Source of the DNA: Tubulanus polymorphus
Lineage: Eukaryota > Animalia > Nemertea
Assembly: GCF_964204645.1 (NCBI RefSeq)
Contig: NC_134035.1
Location: 13,886,686-13,950,685, forward strand
Direction of reading: 5' to 3'
DNA: 64,000 nt
Shown: positions 3,101 through 48,742 of the stretch, piece by piece
Position numbering within the stretch: position 1 is the first letter of the stretch
Layout of the letters: the number at the start of each line of letters is the position of its first letter
Notes under the pieces: generated by a model
Told to the model about the DNA's origin: nothing
Seen by the model: only the letters and a program-made list of their open reading frames with translations
Database searches by the model: none
Translations under genes and position numbers: made by a program

Positions 3101-6100
3101 CTATAATCGACGAATATCAGCCATAGTTAAAGCTATATATTTACACAGATCTGTTTTAGTGTCGGTCGGAAAAAGACAAACTTCGTTTTCTGTGGAACAA
3201 ATCGCTTGGAATTGACGCGGAAACAAACTGACTCGACGAGTTGGCTTTCTCGTCGATACCACTATAAACTGATCTAAATATGTGTGATTTCTGTCGACAA
3301 ACATTATGTGTTTGGAATTATTCTGAAATTAACATTGCAGATAATTATTCGTATTAGTGATTTATAAGCATTAGATATCGACAAAGCGATCAAAATAACG
3401 ATCACAAATAGATCGAAATATATATGTTGAAAATAACGATCGAGTTAGACTTGAAAAACGCTAAAAAGAAGATGAAATCAAGAACGACTTACAGGAATGG
3501 ATGTATTTTCAGCTAAAGTGGTTCCGGATACATCTACAGCGAATGATTCTATTGAAGACGGACTATTGTCGAGTTTCTTACACAAAATATTCAATAATTT
3601 CACCTAAAACAAAATCATTGAAATTATTTTAATGAATACTATTCATTTCAGATATGACTTTCACGACTGATATCGCGGTTATTGTCATCACACTATTGAC
3701 TGGTTACCAGTTACCACACCTGACTGGTCACCAGTCACCACACCTGACTGGTCACCAGTCACCACACTGACCAGACAAACTTACAAACTCCCCTAATCAC
3801 TCCTGGTCTATGGTCTAGCGGTTAGCGTGGTCGGCTGGCGTTCCGTTGGTCTGTGGTTCGAGTCCTGCTAGGGGTTAGGGTTTGCGACGGGTTAGGGTTA
3901 TGGCTAGGGTTAGGGTTACCTACCAGCTCTCAAAGGGTTAGCGTCACGGCCGTACTAGGTTTAGAGTCACACGCTGGGCTCAATTTTTGCTTGGAGGTTA
4001 AATTTTAAACTCGTTTTGTTAAAAGAAATTTCTCTTTTTTTAAAAGAACTGCCCTTGAATATTTGAATATTGTTGTTTACGTCACAGTTTCATTATGAAT
4101 ATATAATTTGAATAATCAATAACGGTTTTATGTGTTGAATACATACGATGGTGTCACGTGGGTTGTCGACGATATTACGTAACACGACGCGTTGCATTTT
4201 ATATCTGATTAAATCTAAATGTTCAAAATCCGTCCCATCTACAAAATATACACAACATGATATTATATTTACAGTCACTAACTTATCAAACAGCTATTTT
4301 TGGGGGGGGGGGGGGTAAATTAACAAGAAGAATTATACAAGTACAATCTAATATAGAATTCTCAAATCCAAGTCTAAACTTACACCTGATATAAGGTTAA
4401 ACCTGGACCATAATTCTGAAAACTTACCGAATGAATAGGCGACAACAGTGTTGACAGTTTTACTCGGTGTAAACTGCATTTCAGAGAAGAATTCTGAGAC
4501 TCGATGCCAAATTAAATCTGGTATCGCACACGTCACATCTACTGTTACCAATCTCAAACTATCTTGGAAATATTTCAGAAATATCCGAGAACTTTCTTCA
4601 TAAAGAATCGCTCGTTTCTGTAATAGATTGAAATACCACAACATATTCAATACTGTTAACGCCTCATCCTCTGGGATTATTGACAACTCCCACCTCTGGG
4701 GTATACCTGAGTTCTAGGACCACTTCCTCCCACAATTCAGGGTTACCTGAGTTCTAGGACTCCCACTCACCCCATGAGGGTTACCAGGACCACTAACTCC
4801 CACCCCATGAGGGTTACTAGGACCACTAACTCCCACCCCATGAGGGTTACTATGACCACTCCCTCCTACCCCATGAGGTTTACCTGAGTTCTAGAGGCGT
4901 CTGCTTCGTCAGATTGTCCACAGATATCTAACTGTTTGTTAGCCGGTGCTCCAGCTCCAGCTCCTCCAGATTTCACATCCACTCCAGATTTCACATCCAC
5001 GTGTTTAATCAGTTTGTCTTTAGGCACCGCTAAATTCAACGCAAACATCACTGGATACTGTGTGTGTGTAAATAATATTAGTTACATATCATTATAAACA
5101 CTGAATACTGTAAATAATATTAGTTACATATCATTATAAACACTGAATACTGTAAATAATATTAGTTACATATCCTAAAAAACCCTAGGATACATTTTAA
5201 GTTAGTTTAAAATATAGTTTTATATTCTATCAGTGGTCGCTGTGGAGGGAAGGACAGACGCAGAAAGCGCCGGGTCACATCACATCATAGGTGCACAACC
5301 GAATCAGCTCGACGAGTATTGTGTGTCATCTTTATACAATACTCTATAAAACAGAATGTATCGTATAATTCCAGGTAGTTAAATAGTTATAAGAATGCAA
5401 CTATCACAATTTTCACGATGAAGTTTATTTACAATCTCGATTTCTACTCATCGCTTCGAGTCCTTTTCAAGAAATGATATGAATGTATCGTCTTGGGGTT
5501 TCTGCACGAGTCTAGATTTAGAGTTTGGGGAATCGGGGATTCATTTATAAATTCATTGCATATTTCTGTAACAGATTTTCTGTTCTTATTGAAGAAAAAC
5601 CATTCATATAAAAACCATAAATATGACACAAAACTTTTTGACCTTTCGACAGTTTTGAAAATGATTCATAAAATTGAGTCGAAAAGTCAAAAACCTTCCT
5701 AAGTGTTTTCTTCGTGCGGGTTTTTTCAGTTGAATGATAAAGTTGGAATGTTACTTCGGGAAATTCTTCTCTTGACAAAAACACGTCGATAAACCGAAAA
5801 AAAACCTCTTGACGTAATCAGATAATGACGAGGGTGAAGGTCGCCGCACGTCGCGGTCATAAAACACCGATTACGACGAAAACCGGATTATACCGGTTTG
5901 GTCTTTAAGTTTAGCAGTACTTGAAAACATTTAATGATTGTGTCAAACATTTGGAAAACATTAGATCTGTTTATACCCGGACTTTAGTAAATTGAGTTTT
6001 TGATAAACACATCTGATTTTAAGTTTGTTGTTAACTTCTAGTTTTTTGTCAAGGTGTCTATTTGTTGGTGAAGAAATGACGACATGGACTCCTAGTGACT

Positions 6101-9100
6101 ACAACTGGAACTAAATAGTATATTGTTGACAGATGATAGAATCGTCATGGAAACCACAGCCGTTAAATGACGTACCTTCTGTTCGAGACGTTCCAGTTCT
6201 TTTTGACAGTCATTTGTGAATGTCGGTAATTTCAGTAAATAGCGCAAATTAGGAACAATATCGATGACGTAATCGCCTTCCTCTGCGGCCTGTATTTTAT
6301 CAATCATCGAATCGACGACCCATTTCATCGTTACGCAGCCCGGTGATTCCTGTTTATGGGACAAACATTTAATGCTGAATTATAAATATTTCTCCTCCCA
6401 GGAATAGAAACAATATATGTGTACCTTACACTGGTAGAAATGATAGAACACGACGATCTTCTCATTCTCAAAGACTTCAACGATTCAGTAAAATTATGAT
6501 TCGTTACTAATGGCAACCTTCTCGGTCTCAACAATTTCAACGATTCAGAATAATTATGATTAATTATTGATTGAAACTTTTTCTAATAACTTGAAAAAAG
6601 ATAGTCTGTATTGATCAGGGGTTGAGGGGCGGGGAGGAGAGGGGAGAGGGGGGTACGTGTTGACTGAATGCAATATAAAAACATGGCCACCGACATTCCA
6701 CGAATAACTCTATTGACGAAGCTTTTAACGTTTGACATTTTAGAGATATCCGATATCTTTATATCAAGATAATTCCTGCACGTATTGATCCAAAATTGTC
6801 TCAGTCAATCTCACATTTCGCCCACCCCCCCCCCCCCTCCCTCCCTTCCTTTCCATTCCGTCTCTCCCTCTCTCATTATTCTCAAACGAACAAAATCGAT
6901 TACGACATTTCACGATATCTATATCAAATCTGTCAATATTATTGCCGTCGTCTTGGAAACGTATTCTATGTATAATTTTTAGATCAAACTGTCAGAAAAC
7001 CGCGCGTTAGCGGAGAGTCAAATTAGGGTATAATGAGGGTCCAATCCAGGGTCCATGGAGGATGATGGCCATCGTAAAAACAGATCAGACACTCTACAAC
7101 TCTGAAACCAGTTTCATAGTGTACGTAGGTTTGATTTTACTCTGAACCTAGTTCCACAGTTGTCTGGGTATATTTGACTTCCACAGTTGTGTGGGTTTAA
7201 TTGGACCCTGAACCCAGTTCCACAGTTGTGTGGGTTTAATTGGACCCTGAACCCAGTTCCAAAGTTGTGTGACTATTTCACTGTAGATCCAGTTCCACAG
7301 TGTGGGTTTTATTTGCCACTGTGGATCCAGTTCCACAGTGTGGGTTTTATTTGACTGTGGATCCAGTTCCACAGTGTGGGTTTTATTTGACTCTGAACCC
7401 AGTTCCACAGTTGTGTGGGTTTAAATGGACCCTTTGGATCCAGTTCCACAGTTGTGTGGGTTTAATTTGACTCTTTGGATCCAGTTCCACAGTTGTGTGG
7501 GTTTAGTTTGACTCTGAACCCAGTTCCACAGTTGTGTGGGTTTAAATGGACCCTTTGGATCCAGTTCCACAGTGTGGTTTTTATTTGCCACTGTGGATCC
7601 AGTTCCACAGTGTGGGTTTTATTTGCCACTGTGGATCCAGTTCCACAGTGTGGGTTTTATTTGCCACTGTGGATCCAGTTCCACAGTGTGGGTTTTATTT
7701 GACTGTGGATCCAGTTCCACAGTGTGGGTTTTATTTGACTCTGAACCCAGTTCCACAGTTGTGTGGGTTTAAATGGACCCTTTGGATCCAGTTCCACAGT
7801 GTGGGTTTTATTTGCCACTGTGGATCCAGTTCCACAGTGTGGTTTTTATTTGCCACTGTGGATCCAGTTCCACAGTGTGGGTTTTATTTGCCACTGTGGA
7901 TCCAGTTCCACAGTGTGGGTTTTATTTCACTGTAGATCCAGTTCCACAGTGTGGGTTTTATTTGCCACTGTGGATCCAGTTCCACAGTGTGGGTTTTATT
8001 TGCCACTGTGGATCCAGTTCCACAGTGTGGGTTTTATTTGCCACTGTGGATCCAGTTCCACAGTGTGGGTTTTATTTGCCACTGTGGATCCAGTTCCACA
8101 GTGTGGGTTTTATTTGCCACTGTGGATCCAGTTCCACAGTGTGGGTTTTATTTGCCACTGTGGATCCAGTTCCACAGTGTGGGTTTTATTTGCCACTATG
8201 GATCCAGTTCCACAGTGTGGGTTTTATTTGCCACTGTGGATCCAGTTCCACAGTGTGGGTTTTATTTGACTCTGAACCCAGTTCCACAGTTGTGTGGGTT
8301 TAAATGGACCCTTTGGATCCAGTTCCACAGTGTGGGTTTTATTTGCCACAGTGGATCCAGTTCCACAGTGTGGGTTTTATTTGCCACACTGTGGATCCAG
8401 TTCCACAGTGTGGGTTTTATTTGCCACTGTGGATCCAGTTCCACAGTTTGGGTTTTATTTGCCACTGTGGATCCAGTTCCACAGTTGTGTGGGTTTTATT
8501 TGCCACTGTGGATCCAGTTCCACAGTGTGGGTTTTATCTGCCACACTGTGGATGACCCTGCTGATGAAGAGTTCGGGAGCTCTAGAGTCTTCTGTACCTT
8601 GATTATATCTTGAATATCTTTATTATTTACGTTCATATCTTTAACTTTCTGCGGAAGTTCGTCGAGTATAATTTCCTCTGTACTCAAGTGATGGAATCCA
8701 TACGTGTGCATCAGATCGTCCAATACGCGACCTTTCTTCGATCCGGGTCCCCCTGAAATACAATCACTCAGAATTATATACGGTACGTGATGTCGTGTCG
8801 TAGTTCCACCGCGTTTTGTGTGGCCCCAGACTGCAGCTGAATTCAGGAATTCAGACACGATGTACCTAACACTTAACACCGCTAATAATAGCTGCCTATA
8901 GCTAGACACGACACAGGTGTTAAATTGTAATTAATTTGGTCCGTTGTTGTTATTGTCTGGTATCCGACAATAGACAATCGATATTACAGACAGCAGCAAG
9001 TTTACGATACGATAGTGCTCTGTAGGGCTACCGCGGGCCTGATCGATTGGGCGCACATCGCGTTATGGTCAGGTGCCATTAAACCGTGTCTCCACGGGCA

Positions 9101-13106: not shown

Positions 13107-13283
13107 CTTCGGCTAGAAAAAGAGCTAACAAATTAGGCCTATATGATGGAAAGAATTTGGCAGCTGTGTCTCTACTTGAAAGTTGTAACAAACCTTTACT
13201 GTTCTGTCGTATCTGTAGAATATTCCAGTAACCTATTCTTCAGAAAATTGTCTCTTTTATGAGAGAAATTCGAATTAGCGCGA

Positions 13284-13328
13284 CTTTTATAAGGTTTCAT
13301 CGCGGTAGCGGGTTTTTCCTGGTTTTCC
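13284..13328 (-). promoter_or_regulatory. TATA box and Rel/NF-kappaB-type site upstream of the peptide gene
   Basis: TATAAAAG on the minus strand at 13291-13284; GGGTTTTTCC at 13310-13319, plus an adjacent partial site tggttttcc. Confidence 0.5.
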
Positions 13329-16923: not shown

Positions 16924-19900
16924 TTATTTCTTCTTTTTCACTTCAACCACTACTATTGTTATCACTATGGCAGCAATAATTGCAACAATAGCCACAAATA
17001 TGCATAATTTCTTGCGATACTTTTTCTGAAAGGACAAAATGTGAAAACCATTTTAAAAATCACAAATTAAGTTCAATTTTTGAGGAGATAGCAAAACGGT
17101 GACTAGTTCGCCATCTATCAGTAAGAAATAACACTATGATAATGACCTGATATTCCGATGCTTGATGTAGCTGTTTTCCACCTTCGTGGACGTCATCCGC
17201 AGCCCGAGTTACATTCGCTTCTATCGATTCTAAATTTAGAAAATACATATAAACACGATACATATCTCACAATGTGTCCAATAGATGGCGTATTGTTTTA
17301 CCTATAGTGTCTCCTTGTTCGTAAACTAAATTTGCTAAATCTTTGAAAACCTCGTTTATATCAAGAATATCTCCCTGAAATATAAACAAATAAACAATGA
17401 AGTTGGGACTGTGATAATTATGTTGTTCACTTATCCAAATGACACTTGTAAAATGAATTAAAAACATAAATATTGAAATACAAATTGAGACTCAAAAATA
17501 GAGATGACTTCAGTAATGTGACGACTTGTCCAAATGATGACTTACACTTAGTGAATTGATTTAGAAATACAAATTGAGACTAAAAAATAGAGATGACTTC
17601 AGTAATGTGACGACTTATCCAAATGATGACTTACACTTAGTGAATTGATTTAGAAATACAAATTGAGACTAAAAAATAGAGATGACTTCAGTAATGTGAC
17701 GACTTGTCCAAATGATGAATTACACTTAGTAAATTGATTTAGAAGTACAAATTGAGACTCAAAAATAGAGATGACTTCAGTAATGTGACGACTTTATACT
17801 TTTAGCACAGTAGAGACAGTCTGGCTTCATTAACTGACCTCTAATTGTTTAATTTGTTGTTCTCATTAACTGACCTCTAATTGTTTAATTTGTTGTTCTC
17901 GTTCTTGAGCTAATTCTACATCCATCGCTATTTGATCGTTTTCTGCTTGTATCTGCGCCTGACGTTTCTCTTCTTGTTCGAAGAAATTTTGGCGATCGTT
18001 GTCTTCATCCTGTCATCAAATAAATCAATTTCTTCATCTCAAATATTTCTTACGTAACCGATAGAATTAGAAGGGACGAGGAGAGTAATACACGCCACCT
18101 ATATTTCAATCACTGAGATCTAGGTCAAAATCTAAATGTAACACTATTTAAAAACCTAAGTCCGTCAACCTCTGCAAAATGCTATCAGTAACATCTTTCA
18201 TATTTCTGTTCAAATTAATCAGTAATCAACAGTAAGACCCTCAGTAACATCTTTCATATTTCTGTTCAAATTAATCAGTAATCAACAGTAAGACCCTCAG
18301 TAACATCTTTCATATTTCTGTTCAAATTAATCAGTAATCAACAGTAAGACCCTCAGTAACATCTTTCATATTTCTGTTCAAATTAATCAGTAATCAACAG
18401 TAAGACCCTCAGTAACATCTTTCATATTTCTGTTCAAATTAATCAGTAATCAACAGTAAGACCCTCAGTAACATATTTCATATTTCTGTTCAAATTAATC
18501 AGTAATCAACAGTAAGACCCTCAGTAACATATTTCATATTTCTGTTCAAATTAATCAGTAATCAACAGTAAGACCCTCAGTAACATATTTCATATTTCTG
18601 TTCAAATTAATCAGTAATCAACAGTAAGACCCTCAGTGACATCTTTCATATTTCTGTTTAAATTAATCAGTAATCAACAGTAAGACCCTCAGTAACATCT
18701 TTCATATTTCTGTTCAAATTAATCAGTTATCAACAGTAAGACCCTCAGTAACATATTTCATATTTCTGTTCAAATTAATCAGTTATCAACAGTAAGACCC
18801 TCAGTAACATATTTCATATTTCTGTTCAAATTAATCAGTAATCAACAGTAAGACCCTCAGTGACATCTTTCATATTTCTGTTTAAATTAATCAGTAATCA
18901 ACAGTAAGACCCTCAGTAACATCTTTCATATTTCTGTTCAAATTAATCAGTAATCAACAGTAAGACCCTCAGTAACATCTTTCATATTTCTGTATGCATC
19001 AAACAAATCAAATCAGTATTTATCGCGATAGAATAGTAACAAATACTGAAATCAGGAACAGTCGGCAGCTCTGTAAACCCTCAAACTGTCAATGTTCTGA
19101 AATTGAAACCGGTGTGTAGAGTGTAGAAGATGGATACTTACGTTCCAACCGACAGGTGAATCTATTGCTATTAATTGCCCGGATTCTGACTGTTTTTTCA
19201 CTAATGGTTTACAGGATCTAATTCTTTCAGCAACATTCTATAAAATAGAATATAATTCAACCTGTAAATATAAGCTCAGTTTGATGGGGATGAAATAATA
19301 CAAGTGTTTAAATTATACTGCTAGGAACTGTTGGACCATGAGGAACTGAGTGTAGGACCATCAGGAACTGAGTGTTGGACCATGAGGAACTGTTGGACCA
19401 TGAGGAACTGTTGGACCACGAGGAACTGTTGGACCACGAGGAAGTGTTGGACCACGAGGAAGTGTTGGACCATGTGGAACTGTTGGACCACGAGGAACTG
19501 TTGGACCACGAGGAACTGTTGGACCACGAGGAAGTGTTGGACCATGAGGAACTGAGTGCATTGGACCATGAGGAACTGTGCATTGGACCAAGAGGAACTT
19601 TGTCCTGGACCAGGAGATGGTTCCACTGTTCTTAATTAAAACTTAACAAAGACAAGAGGTTTAAAAACCTCGCTCAAACCAGAGAACTGAAACTGTATAT
19701 AGTTTAACGAGGTGTAACTTTGACCGGGATGATTTTTACCTTTTGAATTCTGTTGTATCTTTCAACAGTTTCTCTAAATTGACTGTTCAATCGCGTTAGA
19801 TTCATTTTCTGTTGCTGTTTGAACAAACAAGAAAACATCAAACGAACGAACGAATATTATTTCATTCCAAATAAAGTGTAAAAACTCACTGAACCAAGTG

Positions 19901-21743: not shown

Positions 21744-24700
21744 ATGCCCGGTGTAAATCTAACTCCGCGTCCGACTCCCAAATTCTATTCACACCAACAA
21801 ACTTTCTCCACAAAAAAGGTAACTTCTTCATTCGACAACAAATCAGGAAATGTCAAATTCATTTTTATTTGAGGTACTTGTTGAACTCTACTAATTGCTT
21901 ATTGAATTATTATTTGACGGGTAAGATTCTATTTTCCAGGATTTCAACAAAATAATTGTGCTCGTTATTAGAAAGAAATTGTATAATTTAATTGCATGCA
22001 GGAAAAGAATACATACAGGAGGCTCTAACTAATTACCAACAGAAACTAGCTGTCATTCCACCCTCACCCTCACCCCCCTCCCCCCACTTGGGTTAACTGA
22101 TATTGTACAATGAATTGTTGTGTTCACACAGGAAAGAGAGCGAGCAGGCGGCGGAACTCCTAGAGATTGTCTACCTCCGAAACCACCCGTGAAGAGTGCG
22201 CCACCTATTAGCCGCATTTATCTACAACGACCGGTATTAAAGGCTCAATTAGTATCATTTTTACCGGAACAACAAACAGGTTTAAATCGTTTAATTTTAA
22301 AAGTGTTGAATTCGATCGTCGAGTGTTTCTTGTTTAAATGTTTCTGTTTCTCATTGTAGGTTGTTTAACTAATTACAATCAACAAAGTGAAGAACTTTAT
22401 TTTGATCAATGTTTTGAAGTTCATTCTAAACTTGGAAGTGGTTCATTCGGAGAAGTAAGTCCTGAAAACAAGTTTTACAGGGCTTAGTGGGTGGCTCCAG
22501 GATGTTCAGGGCGGCTCCATGGTCGAATGCTAAAATTGACTCCAGGCACAGAGGCTTGTTCCAGACAAAGTAGTTTGCTCCAGGCTGTTGGGTTGCTCCA
22601 GTCTATCTAAGGGGTGGCTCCAGTCTCAGAGTGGTTGGCTCCGTACTGATAGTCACATACTGTGTATTGTTGTAGGTGTTTAAAGTCCGCAGTAAAGACG
22701 ATGGTAATTTCTACGCCGTTAAAAGATCACGTGATAAATTCCGCGGTGAATCTGATCGGTACGTCCCGCTTTCATCGTCGCTACGGCAACACGTAACAAT
22801 ACTACACTGCCAAATCTATTAATAATTGTCGATATTTTTAAATTCGGTTTCAGGTGTCGTAAATTGGAGGAAGTCGCGAAACACGAGAAACTGAAAAAGC
22901 ACGAGAATTGTGTGAGATTTTATAAAGCGTGGGAGGAAAGACAACATCTATACATACAGACTGAACTGTGTCAGGCTAGGTAAATATACACTAGTGACAC
23001 CTGGTGTCAGGCTAGGTAAATATACACTACTGACACCTGGTGTCAGGCTAGGTAAATATACACTAGTGACACCTGGTGTCAGGCTAGGTAAATAAACACT
23101 AGTGACACCTGGTGTCAGGCTAGGTAAATATACACTACTGACACCTGGTGTCAGGTCAGGTAAATATACACTACTGACACCTGGTGTCAGGCTAGGTAAA
23201 TATACACTACTGACACCTGGTGTCAGGCTAGGTAAATATACACTAGTGACACCTGGTGTCAGGCTAGGTAAATATACACTACTGACACCTGGTGTCAGGC
23301 TAGGTAAATATACACTAGTGACACCTGGTGTCAGGCTAGGTAAATAAACACTAGTGACACCTGGTGTCAGGCTAGGTTAATATACACTACTGACACCTGG
23401 TGTCAGGCTAGGTAAACATACACTACTGACACCTGGTGTCAGGCTAGGTAAATATACACTAGTGACACCTGGTGTCAGGCTAGGTAAATAAACACTAGTG
23501 ACACCTGGTGTCAGGCTAGGTAAATATACACTACTGACACCTGGTGTCAGGTCAGGTAAATATACACTACTGACACCTGGTGTCAGGCTAGGTAAATATA
23601 CACTACTGACACCTGGTGTCAGGCTAGGTAAATATACACTAGTGACACCTGGTGTCAGGCTAGGTAAATATACACTAGTGACACCTGGTGTCAGGCTAGG
23701 TAAATATACACTACTGACACCTGGTGTCAGGCTAGGTAAATATACACTACTGACACCTGGTGTCAGGCTAGGTAAATATACACTAGTGACACCTGGTGTC
23801 AGGCTAGGTAAATAAACACTAGTGACACCTGGTGTCAGGCTAGGTAAATATACACTACTGACACCTGGTGTCAGGTCAGGTAAATATACACTACTGACAC
23901 CTGGTGTCAGGCTAGGTAAATATACACTACTGACACCTGGTGTCAGGCTAGGTAAATATACACTACTGACACCTGGTGTCAGGCTAGGTAAATATACACT
24001 AGTGACACCTGGTGTCAGGCTAGGTAAATATACACTAGTGACACCTGGTGTCAGGCTAGGTAAATATACACTACTGACACCTGGTGTCAGGCTAGGTAAA
24101 TATACACTAGTGACACCTGGTGTCAGGCTAGGTAAATATACACTAGTGACACCTGGTGTCAGGCTAGGTAAATATACACTACTGACACCTGGTGTCAGGC
24201 TAGGTAAATATACACTACTGACACCTGGTGTCAGGCTAGGTAAATATACACTAGTGACACCTGGTGTCAGGCTAGGTAAATATACACTAGTGACACCTGG
24301 TGTCAGGTCAGGTAAATATACACTACTGACACCTGGTGTCAGGCCAGGTAAATATACACTAGTGGCACCTGGTGTCGGGCTAGGTAATGAATACTGTACT
24401 ACACTTGTGTGTCAGGCCAGATTAATGTCCTACTGCACACTAGTGACACCTGGTGGCTCTTCACCACAGTTGACTGCGGTGTACATCTTTGAGTAGAAAA
24501 ACCACATGATTTGAAATTGGGTAAAATAAATTTGAATATGATTTATGTTACAGTTTAACAGATTATTCCGAGTTACAGCACGACATCAGCGAGAAACTCG
24601 TCTGGAATTATTTAGTAGATTTATTATTAGCCGTTAAACATCTTCACGACCACGACCTGATTCATATGGATATAAAACCTGATAATATATTCATCGGAGA

Positions 24701-27700
24701 GGATGGACTCGCTAAACTAGGTGACTTCGGATTAGTTATAGATATCGTCACGGTAACTACTGTTTCTCATTATTACTGAGTAGCCCAAACTCAGTTTAAA
24801 CCCTAGATTTTAACTGGAAACTGGTTGCTGGTCGCTGGTTGCTGCTGGTTGCTGGTTGCTGGTTGCTGCTGGTCGCTGGTCGCTGGCTGCTGGTCGCTGG
24901 TTTTGTGATTGATTAATAACAATGAGATTTGTTTAATTGTTGTTTCTAGGGAGGAAATATTCAAGAAGCTCAAGATGGTGATTGTAAATACATGGCTCCT
25001 GAATTATTAGAAGGACGAGTTGGGAAAGCTGCTGATATATTCAGGTAATCTACTGAGCTCCCTCTCCTTCCTCTCTCCCTCTCTCATCTCTCCCCTCTCT
25101 TGAACTATTAGAAGGACGAGTTGGGAAAGCTGCTGATATATTCAGGTAATCTACTGAGCTCCCTCTCCTTCCTCTCTCCCTCTCCTCTCTCATCTCTCCC
25201 CTCCCTCCTCTCATCTCTCCCCACCTCCTTCATCTCTCCCCTCCCTCCTGTCTCATCTCTCCCCCTCTTCTGAACTATTAGAATGATGATAGTCAGGTAA
25301 TCTACTGAGCTCCCTCTCCTTCCTCTCTCCCTCTCCTCTCTCATCTCTCCCCTCCCTCCTCTCATCTCTCCCCACCTCCTTCATCTCTCCCCTCCCTCCT
25401 GTCTCATCTCTCCCCCTCTTCTGAACTATTAGAATGATGATAGTCAGGTAATCTACTGAGCTCCCTCTCCTTCCTCTCTCCCTCTCTCATCTCTCCCCTC
25501 TCTTGAACTATTAGAAGGACGAGTTGGGAAAGCTGCTGATATATTCAGGTAATCTACTGAGCTCCCTCTCCTTCCTCTCTCCCTCTCTCATCTCTCCCCT
25601 CTCTTGAACTATTAGAAGGACGAGTTGGGAAAGCTGCTGATATATTCAGGTAATCTACTGAGCTCCCTCTCCTTCCTCTCTCCCTCTCTCATCTCTCCCC
25701 TCTCTTGAACTATTAGAAGGACGAGTTGGGAAAGCTGCTGATATATTCAGGTAATCTACTGAGCTCCCTCTCCTTCCTCTCTCCCTCTCCTCTCTCATCT
25801 CTCCCCTCCCTCCTCTCATCTCTCCCCACCTCCTTCATCTCTCCCCTCCCTCCTGTCTCATCTCTCCCCCTCTTCTGAACTATTAGAATGATGATAGTCA
25901 GGTAATTTACTGAGCTCCCTCTCCTTCCTCTCTCCCCTCCTTTCCCTCCCCTCTCTCCCCTCCCCTCTCCCCCTCTCTGTCTCTCCTTCCCCCTACATCT
26001 CTCCTGTCTCCTTCCTCTCTCCTTTCTCTCCCTCTCCTCTGTCATACAGCCACTCACTGAACAGTGTCTATTTGTACACCAGTCTATTATAAATGAATTG
26101 AAATGAGTTTAATTTGTTGTTATTTGTTTCAGTTTGGGAATCACTATATTAGAATTAGCGTCAGATCTAGATTTACCTCGAGGAGGCGAAGGATGGCATC
26201 AACTTCGCACCAATCAAATTCCAACTCAGTTTCTCAAAGGTAAAAATCTGTGAAACTCTTTTTGATCTACGTTGGTATTTAAAATATACTGCGTTTTGTC
26301 AATCAGTGTTTTCTCAATAATTAATCACTACAGTTAAATTCGCTAATTTGAATTGTAGGTAAATCCAGTGATTTACTGGCTATTATCAGCAGTATGATGA
26401 CAATGGATCCGAACTGTCGACCGTCAGTGAATTCTATATTAGAAAATAACATCATTCAAAAGGTGAGTTTTAACTCGCTTACCACAGTTCACTTCTCTGG
26501 GGTTTTGATATAGTTAATCTGGTGCCCTACTCCCCACCCCACCCTCAGCCTGGACCCTACTCCCCCCATCCTCTGCCTGGACGCTGCTGCCCCCCCATCC
26601 TCAGCCTGGACCTTCCAACCATCCCCACCCTTCCCCCCCATCCCACCCTTCTCCCCTCTCCTAGATACTAAACACTTCACAACTACAAACACCAAACATA
26701 AACTTTCAAAAACTGATCGGCTGCATTTCACAGACTTCATCTACAAACCACCCGAATGGTGAATGTTTCTGAAGAGAGAGGGCGCTACCGGGCTGTGTAG
26801 ATGATTACTGGATCTGTTGTGTAATTGTAGGTTTTAAGAAGGCGACGTTGTCAGATAATCTTCAATAAAACGGTCAGTATTTAACACCATTACTCCTCTC
26901 TATTTGTCTCTCTCTCTCTCTGTCTCTCTCTCCATCTCTTCTTCTGTCTCTCTCTTGATCCAGTAAATATCGGAGGTAATTGAATTATTTTGCAGATGCG
27001 TAAAATGGTAGAAATGTTTCGTTATTTTCTGACTGTTGTCACTAGTTTATGGTTATTAGTGACATATCCTCTGCACTATCTGATACCTGATAAACTATGT
27101 ACTCCAGAAACTATCGATACAACTCATCCTCCGGAATGGGATCACAGTTTCTCCGACGGTAACAAACATACACCGTTAACAACATGATGACTTCACGTTT
27201 GTTATGACTTCACTAACAATGACTGTTTCTATTTTGTAGAAGATATTTGTGGAGTTGATGATTCAATAAATATATCTAATAACTCACTGGGAGTTCCTCT
27301 TGATAGTTCAACGTCTAGTGAACCAGATTTACTGCAACAACAAAATCTTTTTCTAGTTCCCAGGTAACAAAAACTGTACCTCCTCTCACCCTCTACACCT
27401 CTCTCTCCTCTAAACCTCCCTCTCTACACCTCCCTCTCCTCTAAACCTCCTTCTCTACACCTCCCTCTCCTCTACACCTCCCTCTCCTCTACACCTCCCT
27501 CTCTACACCTCCCTCTCTACACCTCCCTCTCCTCAACACCTCCCTCTCTACACCTCCCTCTCCTCTAAACCTCCCTCTCCTCTACACCTCCCTCTCTTCA
27601 CCTCCCTCTCCTCTACACCTCCCTCTCTAAACCTCCCTCTCTACACCTCCCTCTCCTCTACACCTCCCTCTCTAAACCTCCCTCTCCTCTACACCTCCCT

Positions 27701-30044
27701 CTCTACACCTCCCTCTCTACACCTCCCTCTCCTCTACACCTCCCTCTCTAAACCTCCCTCTCCTCTACACCTCCCTCTCTACACCTCCCTCTCCTCTACA
27801 CCTCCCTCTCCTCTACACCTCCCTCTCTAAACCTCCCTCTCCTCTACACCTCCCTCTCTACACCTCCCTCTCTACACCTCCCTCTCCTCTACACCTCCCT
27901 CTCTAAACCTCCCTCTCCTCTACACCTCCCTCTCTACACCTCCCTCTCTACACCTCCCTCTCCTCTACACCTCCCTCTCTTCACCTCCCTCTCTACACCT
28001 CCCTCTCTACACCTCACCCTCTACACCTCCCTCTCCTCTAAACCTCCCTCTCCTCTACACCTCCCTCTCTTCACCTCCCTCTCCTCTACACCTCCCTCTC
28101 TTCACCTCCCTCTCCTCTACACCTCCCTCTCCTCTTCACCTCCCTCTCTACACCTCCCTCTCTACACCTCCCTCTCCTCTACACCTCCCTCTCTAAACCT
28201 CCCTCTCCTCTAAACCTCCCTCTCCTCTAAACCTCCCTCTCCTCTACACCTCCCTCTCTACACCTCCCTCTCCTCTACACCTCCCTCTCTACACCTCCCT
28301 CTCCTCTACACCTCCCTCTCTAAACCTCCCTCTCCTCTACACCTCCCTCTCTACACCTCCCTCTCTCTCTACACCTCCCTCTCCTCTACACCTCCCTCTC
28401 TACACCTCCCTCTCCTCTACACCTCCCTCTCCTCTACACCTCCCTCTCTACACCTCCCTCTCCTCTACACCTCCCTCTCTACACCTCCCTCTCTACACCT
28501 CCCTCTCTACACCTCCCTCTCCTCTACACCTCCCTCTCCTCTACACCTCCCTCTCCTCTACACCTCCCTCTCTACACCTCCCTCTCCTCTACACCTCCCT
28601 CTCTACACCTCCCTCTCTACACCTCCCTCTCTTCACCTCCCTCTCCTCTACACCTCCCTCTCCTCTTCACCTCCCTCTCTAAACCTCCCTCTCCTCTACA
28701 CCTCCCTCTCTACACCTCCCTCTCCTCTACACCTCCCTCTCTAAACCTCCCTCTCCTCTAAACCTCCCTCTCCTCTACACCTCCCTCTCTACACCTCCCT
28801 CTCCTCTACACCTCCCTCTCTACACCTCCCTCTCCTCTACACCTCCCTCTCTAAACCTCCCTCTCCTCTACACCTCCCTCTCCTCTACACCTCCCTCTCT
28901 ACACCTCCCTCTCCTCTACACCTCCCTCTCTACACCTCCCTCTCCTCTACACCTCCCTCTCTACACCTCCCTCTCTCTCTACACCTCCCTCTCTACACCT
29001 CCCTCTCCTCTACACCTCCCTCTCTACACCTCCCTCTCCTCTACACCTCCCTCTCCTCTACACCTCCCTCTCTACACCTCCCTCTCCTCTACACCTCCCT
29101 CTCCTCTAAACCTCCTCTACACCTCTCTCTCCTCTACACCTCCCTCTCCTCTACACCTCCCTCTCTACACCTCCCTCTCTCCTTATTTTCCTCTCTATCA
29201 GTACCCTCTCCAACAAAAGTTGTGTAATCACTTACCGGTAACTCTCTCCATCTCCTCACTCCTCTCTCTTTTTCCCTCCTCTCCTCACTCCCTTTCTCCT
29301 CTCTCCTCTGTTCTCTCTCCTCTCTCCCCTCTCTCTCTCCCTCTTCTCTCTCCTCCCTCTCTCTCCTCTCTCCCTCTCCCTCTCTCCTCACTCCATCTCT
29401 CCTTACTCCCTCCCTCTGTCTCCCTTTCTCTCCATCTCTCCTCACTCCCTCTCCCTCTCTCCTCTTTCCCTTTCTCATCTCTCTTATTTTTATTTCAGTA
29501 TTCCCCCTGTTAGATGTTACACTACTCCTGGTTTATTATGTTTCAGTATTCCACCTGTTAGATGTTACACTACTCCCGGTTTATTGCGACACAAACCAAA
29601 ATTATTTACCCCAAAAAATTCTTCTCCAATCCGGTGAGTAAAATATCACTCTCTCACTACGCCGTACAACAATATATCTCCGGTTGCTAAGTGATTTCGA
29701 TTTATTCTTCCTCAGTTCGGTTGATTTAAGCGATTCATCGTGGAACGCTAGTTACGACTCTCCTAACAATAGTTTCCACGACGACGAAGAATACGACTTC
29801 AAAATGAAAACGAACATCGGACCAAAAAATCTGATCAAGGTAAAGATGGCCGACTCTCTGAATCTCCCTATGACATCATCAGATTACATCATCCTATTTG
29901 TTTTATATCGGAGCCTATCTGATGATGTCATAGGGGTATTTATCGTAGTGTAGAGCGTTATATTGTTGTGATTGTTGCTAAGGGTAACTATGTATTGTTT
30001 ATATTCGATAGGTTTTTGAAGAAGCGTCGACTGAAGAGGATTAA
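21744..30044 (+). CDS. PKMYT1: Membrane-associated Tyr/Thr CDK1-inhibitory kinase Myt1, ~15 exons
   Basis: [113 protein letters not shown], hydrophobic membrane segment, C-terminal [11 protein letters not shown]. Confidence 0.95.
22968..24390. repeat. 36-bp minisatellite (~39 copies) whose unit is GTAAATATACACTA(G/C)TGACACCTGGTGTCAGGCTAG, spanning a PKMYT1 donor
   Basis: The exon ends TGTCAGGCTAG|GTAAAT at 22979/22980 and every unit repeats this; internal palindrome TGACACC-T-GGTGTCA. Confidence 0.97.
25001..25930. repeat. Compound repeat duplicating a PKMYT1 exon 3' end and donor, interspersed with CT-rich tracts
   Basis: 'tattagaaggacgagttgggaaagctgctgatatattcaggtaatctactgagc' at ~25005 (real), 25106, 25509, 25610, 25711; shortened variants at ~25272, 25423, 25877. 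Confidence 0.92.
27377..29200. repeat. ~1.8 kb G-free C/T-rich low-complexity satellite (CCTCCCTCT[CCT]CTACA)n in a PKMYT1 intron
   Basis: No G seen on the + strand between 27376 and 29201. Confidence 0.9.
29492..29587. repeat. Tandem duplication of a PKMYT1 acceptor and exon start
   Basis: tttcag|tattcc(c/a)cctgttagatgttacactactcc(t/c)ggtttatt present twice. Confidence 0.9.
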
Positions 30045-32937: not shown

Positions 32938-35210
32938 CTAAATGTGTTGAGTTTCAGTGTTATAACGGCTGTGATTGTTAGTGATCGATATCGGACACAA
33001 TCTCCACGCGTTTAACATTATCACGCACACCTGCGAACACTTCTTAAACACTTCAATAATCGGTATACAAACCGTTCCCATAGCGACCATAACGTTATAA
33101 CAAACCATCAAACATGGCTGAAGACAACCGTTAAAACAAACCGTTAAAATCGGCTTCAACAGATAATCGGCGAGAGAATTCAATATTCCGTAAATTAACG
33201 GATAAACGATACTTCGAAGGATGAATTTGATGAATTCGACGATGAAAACGATGATGACGGAGACGATCAGATGAAAAACGGCGAAACATTCGCGAAATCC
33301 TCGTTTCACGTGTGGAATCAACCTATAATAAAACAACAGCAGCAGCAGCGTTAGAGCACTGATTATCACTGATTATCACTGCACAGATTATCACTGCACA
33401 GATTATCACTGCACAGATTATCACTGCACAGATTATCACTGCACAGATTATCAGAAATAGAACTGGATTATGTATGATATTTGTAATACTTACTTCTGAC
33501 TGATTTTTTCCATTTTGATATTTGAATGATCTTCAATCGCGTATAAATATTCTTTCTTCTCTTCAGCGAAATAATAAACATAACTTTCATTTCTGTAACA
33601 GACATGGTCGTTATTAGTTACAACATTGAACAGGTTTGGGTACGGGCCAGCAGCCCGCGGGCACGGAGGAATCTGATTGGATACTTACTGATGTCGTTGT
33701 AATTGATGATGTAATTGATGTCTCGGTGATTCGGGCCACGGACTCTCGTAGTGAGGTTGTACGTCAGTAACCGTAGCGACGTGAGGAGCGGCCGGAGGGC
33801 TCGTTGCCGTGGAGCTGAATGAAACTGCTGCTGCGTCGTCCTGTGAGGCTGAATTACTCTATAATTACAGCATAGAGATACTAACATTAGTTACAGAACC
33901 ACCACAGCGCCCCCTAACCATCCCTCTAGGATAGCTGTGACCTTAACTACTCACCTTTTTCGGTGTTTTTTGTTTTGATTTAAATTTATCACGCCAGTTC
34001 GATGATGACTTCTCTTCTGCAAAACATAAATAAACCATAAAACAAGTTCGACAGTTCCACAATATCCACAGTTTCCACACATGAAGTTTTATTCACAGAA
34101 ATTCAATTCACCTTTTTTCTCGGTGTTTTTGATTTGATTTGCTCTGTGCATGTTATCGCGCAGCTGAGCGAGTGTTTGTTCCTCGGCCTCCGAGTCGTCC
34201 CACGATCCTAAACCTACAACGCAACAATACAACCATTATACACCGTTACCATAGTTACCACCACCACCACCGATATAGTGACGGAATAGTTACCTGGGTC
34301 GTAAGTGGTACCTTTGCGATGTTTGCCCGGGGGATCTGTATATACGGGTTGAGGAGTGTTACGAGCCTCTAAAATTAGACAATACTCATCATTTCTATGG
34401 TAATAGTTGCTAGGCGCTATAGAAACGGTTGTTTACGTACCGGTTATTGCCGAACTGAAATCGTACGGAGGAGGATGCCCTGGCGAGTGAGTAGGAGATG
34501 AAACTCGAGGTCGCGGAGTCGGACGTTCTTCGTCGCTATAACGCTGCCCCCTGGTGTCGTTAAACGTAACCGCGTTCATCGATCGTGGAACTGATTTCAC
34601 GGTCGAAGGACTGCTCCGACTGCTGCTACCTCTACTGCCCCCTAGTGGCTCGTCGTTGAATCGCGTTCGCGATCCATTCAGTAGTTTTTCAGAGTGATTT
34701 TTCGACGGGGCTGAAAATATAAAAACATTTGCGTCACAATCAACAGTTGTCCACCCATCCCTCTCGGCACTCCCCCTCCCCTCCCTCTCTCCCTCTCCCC
34801 TCCCTCTCTCCCCTCCCCTCCCTCTCCCCTCCCTCTTGGCACTCCCCCTCCCCTCCCTCTCTCCTCCCTCTCGACACTCCCCCTCCCCTCCCCCTCCCCT
34901 CCCTCTCCCCCTCCCCTCCCTCTCCCCCTCCCCTCCCTCTCTCCCTCTCCCTCTCTCCTCTCTGCTATCAGTATCAGCACTCCCTTCTCCCTTCCCTCTC
35001 CCCTTCCTCCATTCTCTTACCACCATTAATGTTGTTCGTTGTATTTGATGATGATTTTTTCTGTTTTGTCGTTGATGTGAATTCATCGTCTGAATCGAAC
35101 TCTATTTTCGGCGCTGTATCGCCCTTAGTAACGCGTGTACTGTCACCGGTGGCGACGCGAGGAGTTATAGCTTCAGCAGTCGTCTCGTCCCAATCTGATT
35201 CACTCTCCAT
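32938..35210 (-). CDS. Uncharacterised multi-exon protein: disordered S/R/P-rich N-terminus and long hydrophobic, Cys-containing C-terminal domain
   Basis: ORF segments MESESDWDETT..., APSKNHSEKLLNGSRTRF..., VIQPHRTTQQQF..., RLIPHVKRGFRECFAVFHLIVSVIIVFIVEFIKFILRSIVYP...AWRLCPISIT*, bounded by GT-AG sites. Confidence 0.7.
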
Positions 35211-43419: not shown

Positions 43420-46398
43420 TAACTATGGTAATTAGGTTTTGAGAACTCACTTTGTAAATTGAGTTTTTCGAGGATTTCGCGAGTTTCCGTTTTACTCTCC
43501 ATATTACTGATCAGATTCACCGGTTTAATCGTCGGCATGGCGATGTCGTAATAGATGTATATTTTACCGGTAAACGTAACGTAAACCAACGCCGGAACAT
43601 TTACTCCTGGATTAACAGCAAAATTACCTGCAATTTAAATATACCATTACATCAAAGATCAGATATTAGGACACTGGGACAGCCCCCGATAAACCCCAGT
43701 CGTTATAACAATGATATGATATACCTGCACAAAATGCTGCTACATTCTCATCAAACAGAAATCTAATAACTTCTTTATTGTAGTTGATGATATAAGTTTG
43801 ACCGTCCCAGGAACATGTGACTACTTCATCTTGACCATCTCCCTACAATAATTCAATCAATATCATCTATAAAATCCACAGTTCTGGACACAGTTCCACA
43901 ATCCAGTTCCACAGATCTGGAAACAGTTCCACAATCCAGTTCCACAGTTCTGGACACAGTTCCACAATCCCGTCCCACAGTTCTGGACACAGTTCCACAG
44001 ATCTGGAAACAGTTCCACAATCCAGTTCCACAGTTCTGGACACAGTTCCACAATCCCGTCCCACAGTTCTGGACACAGTTCCAAAATCCCGTTCCACAGT
44101 TCTGGACACAGTTCCACAATCCCGTCCCACAGTTCTGGACACAGTTCCAAAATCCCGTTCCACAGTTCTGGACACAGTTCCACAATCCAGTTCCACAGAT
44201 CTGGAAACAGTTCCACAATCCCGTTCCACAGTTCTGGACACAGTTCCACAATCCAGTTCCACAGATCTGGAAACAGTTCCACAATCCAGTTCCACAGTTC
44301 TGGACACAGTTCCACAATCCAGTTCCACAGATCTGGAAACAGTTCCACAATCCCGTTCCACAGATCAGTCTGCAGACATTAGATTGATAGCAGCTGATTT
44401 GATACTTACCATAACATCAAGTTTTCCCAGTGAGAAGAATTGTTGTTCTAACTGCATGAACCACTCCACAACTTCATTCTCCAGTAATATCACAGTACCT
44501 ACACAGAAATACAGTAGTATCACAGTACCTACACAGAAATACAGTAATATCACAGTGCCTACACAGAAATACAGTAATATCACAGTAACTACACAGAAAT
44601 ACAGTAATATCACAGTACCTACACAGAAATACAGTAGTATCACAGTACCTACACAGAAATACAGTAATATCACAGTACCTACACAGAAATACAGTAATAT
44701 CACAGTACCTACACAGAAATACAGTAATATCACAGTACCTGCACAGAAATACAGTAATATCACAGTACCTACACAGAAATACAGTAATATCACAGTGCCT
44801 ACACAGAAATACAGTAATATCACAGTACCTACACAGAAATACAGTAATATCACAGTAACTACACAGAAATACAGTAATATCACAGTACCTACACAGAAAT
44901 ACAGTAATATCACAGTACCTACACAGAAATACAGCAATATCACAGTACCTACACAGAAATACAGTAATATCACAGTACCTACACAGAAATACAGTAATAT
45001 CACAGTACCTACACAGAAATACAGTAATATCACAGTACCTACACAGAAATACAGTAATATCACAGTACCTACACAGAAATACAGTAATATCACAGTACCT
45101 ACACAGAAATACAGTAATATCACAGTACCTACACAGAAATACAGTAATATCACAGTACCTACACAGAAATACAGTAATATCACAGTACCTACACAGAAAT
45201 ACAGTAATATCACAGTGCCTACACAGAAATACAGCAATATCACAGTACCTACACAGAAATACAGTAATATCACAGTACCTACACAGAAATACAGCAATAT
45301 CGCAGTACCTACACAGAAATACAGTAATATCACGGTACCTACACAGAAATACAGTAATATCGCAGTACCTACACATAAATACAGTAATATCACAGTACCT
45401 GCACAGAAATACAGTAATATCGCAGTAACTACACAGAAATACAGCAATAGCGCAGTACCTACACAGAAATACAGCAATATCACAGTACCTACACAGAAAT
45501 ATTGAGATTGAGGATTTACCCAATTTCCCCCTGGTGCAGGTTGATGAAACTGCAGTTTAATGCTTACCGTCCAGTGTAGAAAGAGCGCAATGAATCACTG
45601 GTTTACCATCTTTAATTTTACCGGTTTTTAACCCGCCCAGCGCAACCGTGGTTACGTTTGAACTGCGAACGAGAGCCGATCCTAACGGGTAATATACCAC
45701 AGACGGACCTAAATGTTTATCGCTATAGCGACAAAACAAAAACAAACAATCAATATTCTTCATACATCAGACATTTTAATTGGATACTAAAACTAACATT
45801 ACCATGGCGACGCATCAGACGCATCTGACGGTTCAACGCTTCGAATCAACTTCACAAAACTGCCACCAGGCTGCGCTACTAGTAATTCAATATGGCCGTC
45901 TAAATCATGACTGACAGTGATAGACCCAACCTGTCAATATATAATACACATCTGTATACCGGGTTGCACCCAACAGAAATCAGGACTGAAATCTAGAGGA
46001 TCGGGTTTTCAATATAGGAAGATATGCCTCAAGTTGGGACAGGAGATTACAGGAGAACTGGAGAGAAGGGTCAGTTTTTGTAAGGATACTGATTATCTGT
46101 CAATAATCCTGGGACAGGGTCCAGGCTGCTGCTGCTGCTGAGGAGTACAGCGTCCAGTCTGCTGCTGCTGCTGCTGTATCAGTAGCTGCTGCTGCAGCTT
46201 GTTTCAGTAGCTGTTCCTACAGCTGTATCATGAGCTGCTGCTGTAGCTGTATCAGTAGCTGCTGCGGCTGCTGCTGTATCAGTAGCTGCTGCGGCTGCTG
46301 CTGCTGCTGCTGCTGCTGCTGCATCAGTAGCTGCTGCTGTAGCTGTATCAGTAGCTGCTGCTGCTGCATCAGTAGCTGCGGCTGCTGCTGTATCAGTA

Positions 46399-46439
<41 letters not shown>

Positions 46440-48742
46440 ATCAGTAGCTGCTGCTGTAGCTGTATCAGTAGCTGCTGCTGCTGAGGAGTACTGGGTTCAG
46501 GCTGATTATTGATTATATTTACCTGTCCTGCAAGTTGCCATTTTTCTAATTGAACAATAGAACCGGTAACAGTAGAAGCAGACGCAGTTTCGATTCTACT
46601 ATCGGGAGTGAGACCTTCGATCCATCGGAATAAACAAACAACTCGATCAGAATATCCGATAACTAATTCTGTCAAACCATCGCCATCTAGTGAGAAATTA
46701 TAACATAAAATATCAGCGAGACCGTTGTCATCTAGTGAGAAACTATTACGTTAAATATCAGCGAGACCGTTGCCATCTAGTGAGAAACTATTACGTTAAA
46801 TATCAGCGAGACCGTTGCCATCTAGTGAGAAACTATTACATTAAATATCAGCGAGACCGTTGCCATCTAGTGAGAAACTATTACGTTAAATATCAGCGAG
46901 ACCGTTGCCATCTAGTGAGAAACTATTACGTTAAATATCAGCGAGACCGTTGCCATCTAGTGAGAAACTATTACATTAAATATCAGCGAGACCGTTGCCA
47001 TCTAGTGAGAAACTATTACGTTAAATATCAGCGAGACCGTTGCCATCTAGTGAGAAACTATTACATTAAATATCAGCGAGACCGTTGCCATCTAGTGAGA
47101 AACTATAACATTATATATCAGCGAGACCGTTGCCATCTAGTGAGAAACTATAACATTATATATCAGCGAGACCGTTGCCATCTAGTGAGAAACTATTACA
47201 TTAAATATCAGCGAGACCGTTGCCATCTAGTGAGAAACTATTACATTAAATATCAGCGAGACCGTTGCCATCTAGTGAGAAACTATTACATTAAATATTA
47301 GCGAGACCGTTGCCATCTAGTGAGAAACTATTACATTAAATATGAGCGAGACCGTTGCCATCTAGTGAGAAACTATTACATTAAATATCAGCGAGAACGT
47401 TGCCATCTAGTGAGAAACTATAACATTAAATATCAGCGAGACTGTTGCCATCTAGTGAGAAACTATTACATTAAATATCAGCGAGAACGTTGCCATCTAG
47501 TGAGAAACTATAACATTAAATATCAGCGAGACCATTGCCATCTAGCGAGAAAATGTATATCACTAATATCATTGAAATTCGGTGAAATAAACTGACCTAC
47601 TAACCTACATCTTGTAGTAACATCACGCGACTATTCGCTGATAACTGTTGAGTGAACGACGGTTGAATATAGGTGGCGCTGTCATCGATAGAATCATCGT
47701 TTAAATGTTTATCAGACTAGAATGAAAGTGATTTCAGAGCTAATTGTTATCAGTGATATATACTATGATCGTGTAGCTGATTTCAGTTAGTCTGCAGTCC
47801 AGGGAGTCTAAGGGTGAGGTAGTCCAGGGGAGTCTAAGGGTGAGGTAGTCCGGGGGTGGGAGGTAGTGATTTACCTGTTGTGTATTAGTACTAATGTTAC
47901 ATGTATTCACAGTCGGTCCTGGATCAAACTCTTGTTCCTCATTCAGATCAAACACGTGACATTTACCTTCAGCCGTTAAACAGACGATATTATTCTGAAA
48001 TTAATCAATATGAAACTGAGAGACGGTCCCCGCGTAATGGAATACAGATTGTGAGATGGTCCCCCCAGGTGGTACGTACCTTGCCATGATTGAATATATC
48101 ACCGATACTGATACATGTAATCTGTAATCACAATCACAATCACAATCACTGTAAAATCATACACACACAGTACACAATCAGTAATACAATCATTACATGT
48201 AGTTACCATGCCTAAATGTTTGGAATATTTCCAAGGGACTCCTGCACTGGTAGTCAATGGGACTCCCGCACTGGCAGTCAATGGGACTCCTGCACTGGTA
48301 GTCAATGGGACTCCCCCACTACTTGATGTTCCACCTGCAGAAGTCAATGGGACTCCTGTGCCAGTTGATGATGTGTTTTCACTAGAAGTCGATGCTCCAT
48401 CGGAAGTTGCCGGGACTCCACCAGTTGTTGACTGAACTCCAGTAGTCATCGGGACTCCTCCGGCAGTTGATGGGACTCCTGCCGAAGTCGTTGGGACTCC
48501 AGTAGTCCATGTGGCTCCCCCTTTAAAAACCGCTAATTCCCCATCAATATTTCCTATCACTAATTCATTACTCTGAAATAACAATACAGTAATCGTTACT
48601 ATGGATACTGACGCGATCATTGTCTACGGTAACTATGGATACCGACCTGATCATTGTCTACATCTCCGATGACGAGAGCCTCGTTAAATACGTTTCCCGT
48701 AAAATCATATTCTAATTTCTTCACAAATGAAACTGTTCTCAT
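43420..48742 (-). CDS. ITFG2: KICSTOR subunit ITFG2 (integrin-alpha FG-GAP repeat protein 2), multi-exon; 3' end uncertain
   Basis: [162 protein letters not shown]. Confidence 0.93.
43873..44365. repeat. 33-bp minisatellite with CAGTTCCACA core (ITFG2 intron)
   Basis: gttctggacacagttccacaatccagttccaca and variants. Confidence 0.93.
44482..45501. repeat. 30-bp minisatellite (34 copies), minus-strand unit GTACTGTGATATTACTGTATTTCTGTGTAG, spanning an ITFG2 acceptor
   Basis: The exon begins TAG|GTACTGTGATATTACTGGAG (G-T-V-I-L-L-E) at 44498; unit = last 13 intron nt + first 17 exon nt. Confidence 0.97.
46120..46485. repeat. Intronic (CTG/CAG)n-rich repeat
   Basis: Lies downstream of the ITFG2 donor CAG|GTAAAT (~46522). 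Confidence 0.9.
46682..47550. repeat. 45-bp minisatellite (20 copies) spanning an ITFG2 acceptor
   Basis: Minus-strand unit ATGGCAACGGTCTCGCTGATATTTAATGTAATAGTTTCTCACTAG; the real exon starts CTAG|ATGGCGATGGT at 46686. Confidence 0.97.

Follow-up and report, generated by a model that had tools for sequence, protein, structure and literature searches.

The window analysed here is a 64-kb stretch of DNA from the nemertean Tubulanus polymorphus (C11:13,886,686-13,950,685) that lies 26-90 kb from the end of a 13,976,313-bp contig, this end probably being the end of the chromosome. It carries multi-exon eukaryotic genes on both strands. In four of these genes, ITFG2, PKMYT1, a syntaxin 7/12-like gene and an AK-like gene, there are tandem repeats whose units contain an exon end together with the adjoining splice signal, and a splice site is thereby repeated up to 40 times beside its exon. 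The number of such arrays does not differ significantly from that expected if repeats of the same lengths were placed at random in these short-intron genes.

Gene models and exon boundaries

All four gene models (Table 1) have AG/GT at each internal boundary and consistent phases. Homology searches were made with the exons queried singly, without joining them into a spliced model, and the matches obtained in this way follow on from one another. The Itfg2 Pfam profile is continuous across the ITFG2 exons, with exon 6 covering positions 85-130 and exons 9, 10 and 11 covering 232-260, 261-299 and 302-329 respectively. Exons of PKMYT1 match the Pkinase profile at 46-81 and then at 87-147, a syntaxin exon matches positions 5-31 of the SNARE profile, and the AK-like exons can be laid contiguously on homologues of 400-430 residues (protein representatives found with one exon, followed by local tblastn). 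The same homologue alignment places the start of AK-like exon 5 at 4617, and intron 4 therefore ends at 4618 and not at 4696. The possibility that AK-like intron 4 was built from both exon ends had been considered and was dropped, since it would need exon 5 to start at 4695. The preliminary description of this DNA had proposed that splice sites of conserved genes are multiplied by the repeats, and the exon ends on which that proposal depends are supported by AG/GT dinucleotides, reading frame, Pfam continuity and homologues alike. An Rfam scan of the window gave nothing reaching the gathering score.

Tandem arrays at donor and acceptor sites

Tandem Repeats Finder returned 128 rows for the window, which merge into 62 arrays and account for 30.2% of the sequence. 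The program recovers all of the long junction arrays that had been noted beforehand. The ITFG2 35-mer, present in two copies, falls under its threshold and is visible in the sequence.

Table 1. Gene models and repeats at or near exon-intron boundaries. Positions are those of the window, except in the last row.
Feature	Position	Strand	Location	Repeat	Relation to junction, or remarks
ITFG2	48742 to 42800	-			12 exons, modelled from sequence
PKMYT1	22360 to 29953	+			12 modelled exons
Syntaxin 7/12-like gene	20013 to 16927	-			7 modelled exons
AK-like gene	9969 to 4428	-			5 modelled exons
AK-like donor array	4695..4897	-	Intron 4 (4883-4618)	About 5.5 units of 33-40 nt	End of exon 4 (4884) and donor
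Syntaxin 7/12-like donor array	17827..17900	-		36 nt x 2, 100% identical	Last 24 nt of exon (ends 17875), donor and 12 nt of intron
PKMYT1 36-mer donor array	22968..24417	+	Intron 3	36 nt x 40	Last 12 nt of exon (ends 22979), donor and 22 nt of intron
PKMYT1 101-mer donor array	24996..25930	+	Intron 5	101/151-nt units, 8 donors	About 48 nt of exon end (25044), donor and CT-rich intron stretch
ITFG2 35-mer donor duplication	48593..48662	-	Intron 1	35 nt x 2	Last 15 nt of exon 1 (ends 48647), donor and 20 nt of intron
AK-like 42-mer	5067..5174	-	Intron 3	42 nt x 2.6	9 nt upstream of exon 4 acceptor (exon starts 5057)
PKMYT1 48-mer acceptor array	29493..29585	+	Intron 10/exon 11	48 nt x 1.9	Acceptor and 42 nt of exon start
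ITFG2 30-mer acceptor array	44482..45501	-	Intron 8	30 nt x 34	13 nt of acceptor region and first 17 nt of exon 9 (starts 44498)
ITFG2 45-mer acceptor array	46682..47552	-	Intron 5	45 nt x 19-20	Acceptor repeated in register up to exon 6 (starts 46686)
745-nt segment	35903..43344	-	ITFG2 intron 11 (3' part) and last exon (start)	Six tandem copies, about 1.34 kb spacing, about 94% identity	Segment contains 3' part of intron 11, acceptor and start of last exon (42930)
Candidate further acceptor array	33357..33453	-		15 nt x 5.8 and 10 nt x 2.5	Each unit ends in acceptor-like CAG
L066 junction array	L066:1236-1398 (C8:16,417,335-16,417,497)		STE20-like kinase gene, 260 kb from contig end	52-54 nt x 3	30 nt of exon end and consensus donor

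The donor arrays differ in how well the repeated site is preserved. Every copy of the PKMYT1 36-mer retains the GT; each unit also contains a 7-nt inverted repeat, and no pyrimidine tract precedes the AG. In the AK-like donor array the exon end and GT are kept in three units, while in three others the donor has been lost through an 8-nt deletion. The second copy of the ITFG2 35-mer retains the GT and is altered at positions -1 to -3. The full 101-nt units of PKMYT1 (25100-25750) each resemble a 37-nt pseudo-exon, with a pyrimidine tract, an AG, exon-like sequence and a donor, the inclusion of which would shift the frame.

Among the acceptor arrays, the two acceptors of the PKMYT1 48-mer end at 29498 and 29546; the frame is open from both, and the sequence does not discriminate the real one. 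The unit of the ITFG2 45-mer shares about 5 identical exon nucleotides with the start of exon 6 and about 63% similarity over 24 nt, its exon part having diverged. Downstream of ITFG2 the repeats of the 745-nt segment provide five spare copies of the terminal exon, and this six-copy segment is a junction-spanning duplication of the same kind on a larger scale. The repeats at 33357-33453 lie directly upstream of an open frame for a predicted membrane-like protein, and only the last CAG opens that frame after a short ATG exon; this array may possibly be a tenth junction case. A 37-mer in TYMS was rejected as a junction array, as it begins 18 nt past the donor and does not span the junction.

Exon sequence within the repeat units

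As a measure of whether the units contain real exon sequence, 64 exon ends were each represented by a probe of 24 nt taken wholly from the exon. Each probe was aligned to the intron adjoining that exon, and all non-cognate probes aligned to the same intron were used as the null. Eight of the 64 probes outscore every non-cognate probe, where about one would be expected by chance. Seven of these eight correspond to arrays already described, namely the AK-like donor (score 22 against a null maximum of 18), the syntaxin donor, the PKMYT1 36-mer, 101-mer and 48-mer, and the ITFG2 30-mer and 35-mer. The eighth, a 19-nt match to exon 2 in AK-like intron 1, is a single non-tandem match and was not counted as an array.

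The ITFG2 45-mer and the AK-like 42-mer both failed this exon-only test. Nine repeats had originally been listed as straddling a junction, and for seven of them the unit does hold both exon sequence and splice signal. The 45-mer repeats the acceptor alongside its diverged exon part, and the 42-mer, which stops 9 nt short, adjoins the junction without demonstrable exon sequence (p = 0.86). Both types of boundary are affected, with five donor arrays and three acceptor arrays.

Within the units, the stretches derived from exons code for conserved residues, as judged from the Itfg2 profile (position 232 onwards), the kinase region of PKMYT1 and the contiguity of homologues, and it was therefore the exon that seeded the array and not the reverse. 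On the established kinase fold, the exon part of the PKMYT1 unit falls after the APE motif and before subdomain IX (the subdomain VIII-IX region). Two units, the PKMYT1 36-mer and the ITFG2 45-mer, were searched against the whole 268-Mb genome with probes three units long, and each found no match outside its own locus. These two arrays are therefore local duplications rather than mobile elements.

Contribution of the arrays to intron length

When each array in the four genes is collapsed to a single unit the introns are mostly 72-166 nt in length, with a range of 39-1063 nt. Collapsing the array reduces ITFG2 intron 8 from 1069 to 79 nt, ITFG2 intron 5 from 918 to 92 nt, PKMYT1 intron 3 from 1574 to 160 nt and PKMYT1 intron 10 from 2183 to 138 nt. 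These introns thus owe the greater part of their length to the arrays, which, as had been suggested, are a route to intron growth. In the corresponding comparison for intron gain, the junctions coincide with contiguous positions in profiles or homologues and no new intron position could be demonstrated. ITFG2 intron 1 (48573-48646) is only 74 nt long and would be 39 nt without the 35-nt duplication, compared to at least 72 nt for the other introns here.

Predicted effects of splicing at a decoy

Each of the five donor arrays has a stop codon close behind its real donor, at a distance of 2-28 nt (7 nt in the syntaxin gene). Splicing from a donor further downstream would therefore introduce a premature stop, and only the first, most upstream donor leaves the frame intact. 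The acceptor arrays are more varied. In the ITFG2 45-mer every unit but the one nearest to the exon contains an in-frame stop. In the ITFG2 30-mer the frame is open from each copy, with ten residues added per unit, and use of the upstream acceptor of the PKMYT1 48-mer would add 16 residues in frame. Across the arrays the copies are 92-100% identical to their consensus, with little or no variation in GT and AG. Because the copies are so alike, this retention is uninformative on selection.

Placement of arrays relative to junctions

To obtain an expectation for random placement, the arrays in the four genes were collapsed to one unit, and a segment as long as the unit was then moved through all possible positions in the collapsed gene. 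Purely exonic placements were discarded, and at least 4 nt were required on each side of a junction for it to be scored as spanned. Of 24 non-exonic arrays, 5.9 ± 1.9 are expected to span a junction by this procedure. The number observed is 8 (P = 0.20), or 9 with the AK-like 42-mer included (P = 0.09), so that among these 24 arrays there is neither significant enrichment at junctions nor depletion. In the absence of depletion, junction-spanning arrays are seemingly tolerated as well as internal ones.

The preliminary description had set out explanations for the arrays and had stated that its reading would be refuted by a lack of enrichment over random placement, given the short introns and high repeat density. 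Within the power of this sample that lack of enrichment is what was found. Neither a mutational process aimed at junctions nor a dedicated system of decoy or recursive splice sites is supported, since random placement in short introns already predicts 5.9 ± 1.9 of the 24 arrays. A further suggestion, that only duplications which span a junction or are purely intronic survive selection, agrees with the data.

A few purely exonic repeats are present. ITFG2 exon 2 contains in-frame coding minisatellites with units of 24 and 21 nt (48235-48320 and 48437-48500), and AK-like exon 4 contains two copies of an 18-nt in-frame unit (4964-5000) at a site where homologues have a gap. These in-frame coding minisatellites appear to be a tolerated subset of purely exonic duplications.

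Repeat density in the window and elsewhere in the genome

The assembly is chromosome-scale, with 268 Mb in 77 contigs, and a comparison sample was taken from it consisting of 47 kinase-domain exon matches outside the window (77 kb, 86 internal exon ends). Tandem repeats cover 6% of the sequence around these exons, compared to 30% of the window. A junction array was found at one of the 86 exon ends, at locus L066 (Table 1); arrays near other exon ends in the sample (L051, L065 and L069) are exonic or internal and were not accepted as junction arrays. For 69 loci around kinase exons, minisatellite cover decreases away from the contig end, from 15% at less than 0.5 Mb to 4.4% at 0.5-2 Mb, 3.0% at 2-5 Mb and 2.2% beyond 5 Mb. 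The concentration of junction arrays in the window accords with its location 26-90 kb from a contig end, in a zone of several-fold higher minisatellite cover.

The window contains several other kinds of repeat. An approximately 18-nt core motif, in either orientation, is common to the consensus units of at least six arrays (7152-8553, 19323-19616, 20112-20222, 43875-44363, 55042-55224 and 60191-60518), which by this shared core are a dispersed minisatellite family, in contrast to the locus-specific junction arrays. Telomere-like hexamer repeats occur inside minisatellite units at 3866-3918, 20822-20924 and 56085-56822. Long arrays that are pyrimidine-rich (CT-rich) on the plus strand are found at 25058-26036, 27390-29483, 34770-34962, 51279-51575 and 57657-57764, and one CT-rich array consists of 115 copies of a 17-nt unit in a PKMYT1 intron. 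There is also an intronless TK2-like deoxynucleoside kinase gene at 14535-15266, with an array of 24 copies of a 26-nt unit that begins 42 nt past its stop codon. The single-exon protein that it encodes (14535-15263) is 66% identical to its match in Lineus longissimus and 55% identical to that in Branchiostoma, and the search returned no identical protein.

Interpretation

We consider it probable that the arrays are minisatellites of the 'mirage' type known from amphioxus, and that they arose as a side effect of tandem duplication, which is frequent in these short-intron genes close to a chromosome end. The founding duplication unit would in each case have happened to span an exon-intron boundary and would then have expanded like any other minisatellite, the duplication itself being likely to arise through replication slippage, unequal exchange or break repair. 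Junction arrays would be frequent here because the window lies in a minisatellite-rich zone near the contig end. As the introns are mostly 72-166 nt and the units 30-100 nt, a large share of the tolerated duplications must include a junction. Selection would mostly remove duplications that are purely exonic, leaving a few survivors that are in frame.

The extra splice sites could be tolerated because, as we propose, the copy proximal to the exon is the one that is used. In donor arrays this would be the first donor, by analogy with the experiments on human F7 described below, and in acceptor arrays the last acceptor, which is the sole copy followed by a full exon and donor. Transcripts spliced at a decoy donor would meet a stop codon 2-28 nt further on and would presumably be removed by nonsense-mediated decay. 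The net result would be intron growth rather than regulation.

Several points weigh against this interpretation. The site usage proposed here is predicted from sequence and the copy numbers are those of the assembly, and the null test, with its four genes and 24 arrays, is compatible with an enrichment at junctions of up to roughly 2-3 fold. The ITFG2 30-mer, the PKMYT1 48-mer and the exon-nearest unit of the ITFG2 45-mer are open in frame, and splicing errors at these open acceptor arrays would therefore escape nonsense-mediated decay. The contig-end gradient is taken from small loci picked around kinase exons and not at random, and is indicative only.

A mutational process that favours splice junctions, in which breaks or R-loops at exon ends are repaired with duplication, could also seed arrays at these positions, and the number of junction arrays is indeed slightly over expectation (8-9 compared to 5.9). 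However, the excess is not significant (P = 0.2-0.09), 15 or 16 of the 24 non-exonic arrays are intronic and lie away from junctions, and kinase exon ends elsewhere carry a junction array in only one case out of 86, so that such a process is an unlikely source of the arrays. It is more doubtful still that the arrays are functional, whether as decoys that slow or tune splicing, as ratchet points for recursive splicing or as a source of variable in-frame insertions. The juxtaposition of AG and GT in several units, the open frame from acceptor copies of the ITFG2 30-mer and PKMYT1 48-mer, and the retention of GT and AG in nearly all copies each speak in favour of such a role, but the last of these is uninformative when copies are 92-100% alike. 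The introns, at no more than 2.2 kb, are far shorter than those with recursive splicing, the PKMYT1 36-mer lacks a pyrimidine tract before its AG, and homologous profiles have no room for insertions. Furthermore, the host genes are unrelated, and the frequency of the arrays tracks local repeat density.

The arrays, or their copy numbers, might instead have been created during assembly. One amphioxus mirage was once mis-assembled (PMC3087553), and the copy numbers given here come from the assembly alone. Against this, the arrays contain structured internal variants and are not made of perfect copies, the same architecture is seen at an independent locus on another contig (L066), and the assembly is chromosome-scale. 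In a search of sequencing runs, a DNA data set also contains 67% of the sampled words from the ITFG2 stretch, although it may derive from the source sample; no run recorded as RNA was found to contain them. An origin as artefacts is accordingly very improbable. Insertion of a splice-site-carrying mobile element of the introner type is scarcely credible, given that neither the PKMYT1 36-mer nor the ITFG2 45-mer has a match beyond its own locus genome-wide, that the units hold conserved coding sequence of the host exon, and that terminal repeats or target duplications are unnecessary as an explanation.

There is a small chance that the arrays are not fully neutral. Junctions could be modestly preferred for the birth of minisatellites (1.5-3 fold), or the in-frame acceptors of the 34-copy ITFG2 30-mer and the PKMYT1 48-mer could be partly used and give rise to length-variable proteins. 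The genome would in that case offer a natural experiment on competition among as many as 40 identical splice sites in essential genes.

If the arrays are by-products of duplication, as we favour, they reveal no new regulatory system. They show instead how often junctions are caught in tandem duplication where introns are tiny and duplication is frequent, and that junction duplications, which can lengthen an intron ten-fold, are apparently tolerated about as well as purely intronic ones. With 40 identical donors in one case and 34 identical in-frame acceptors in another, these conserved genes also provide a ready-made assay of how the spliceosome chooses its site.

Comparison with known systems

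Two known systems are approached only in part by the arrays described here. Ratchet points for recursive splicing resemble some of the units in having AG and GT juxtaposed, but they are recognised by a strong pyrimidine tract with AG followed directly by GTAAGT in a very long intron, and here the introns are at most 2183 nt and the pyrimidine tract is often missing. Introner-like elements are recognised by many dispersed, near-identical copies, and the two units tested match their own locus only.

In the Rogers model an intron is gained when an exon segment containing AGGT is duplicated in tandem, and such gain is documented (Hellsten 2011, PMC3265369; potato RdRp, PMC4974935). As in that model, tandem duplication here yields extra splice sites from existing sequence; the difference is that existing introns have been enlarged, at boundaries that match homologous profiles. 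A closer parallel for the donor arrays is the 37-bp variable number tandem repeat in intron 7 (IVS7) of human F7, where the first unit spans the exon 7 boundary and experiments show that splicing selects the furthest upstream among identical donors and the pseudo-donors are silent (PMC1557585). The real donor in each of our five donor arrays is likewise the most upstream of its identical copies, as judged from the reading frame. F7 is a single locus with experimental proof, while here there are many loci, including acceptor arrays, known from sequence.

The closest match is to the 'mirage' minisatellites of amphioxus, which are tandem repeats across exon-intron boundaries in Adh3, troponin C, the globins BflGb6/9 and PGBD5 (PMC3087553, PMC3902484). 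Splicing of these genes is undisturbed as judged by reverse transcription PCR, copy number differs between haplotypes, and it has been suggested that new introns could originate from the repeats (PMC3087553, PMC3902484). The arrays described here share with them head-to-tail intronic repeats that abut an exon, units of tens to about 150 bp made of a splice signal and exon sequence, the involvement of both 5' and 3' boundaries, their occurrence in unrelated genes and a proposed route to intron change. They differ in reaching 34-40 copies, compared to 2-6 in the globins, in the presence of seven to nine cases inside 44 kb near a contig end, and in being known from an assembly alone. They also belong to another lineage, the best protein match being nemertean (66%, compared to 55% for Branchiostoma), and 'mirage' minisatellites would thus extend beyond the cephalochordates. 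The arrays add a new case, from a different animal lineage and with an unusual local density, to a type of repeat that is already known.

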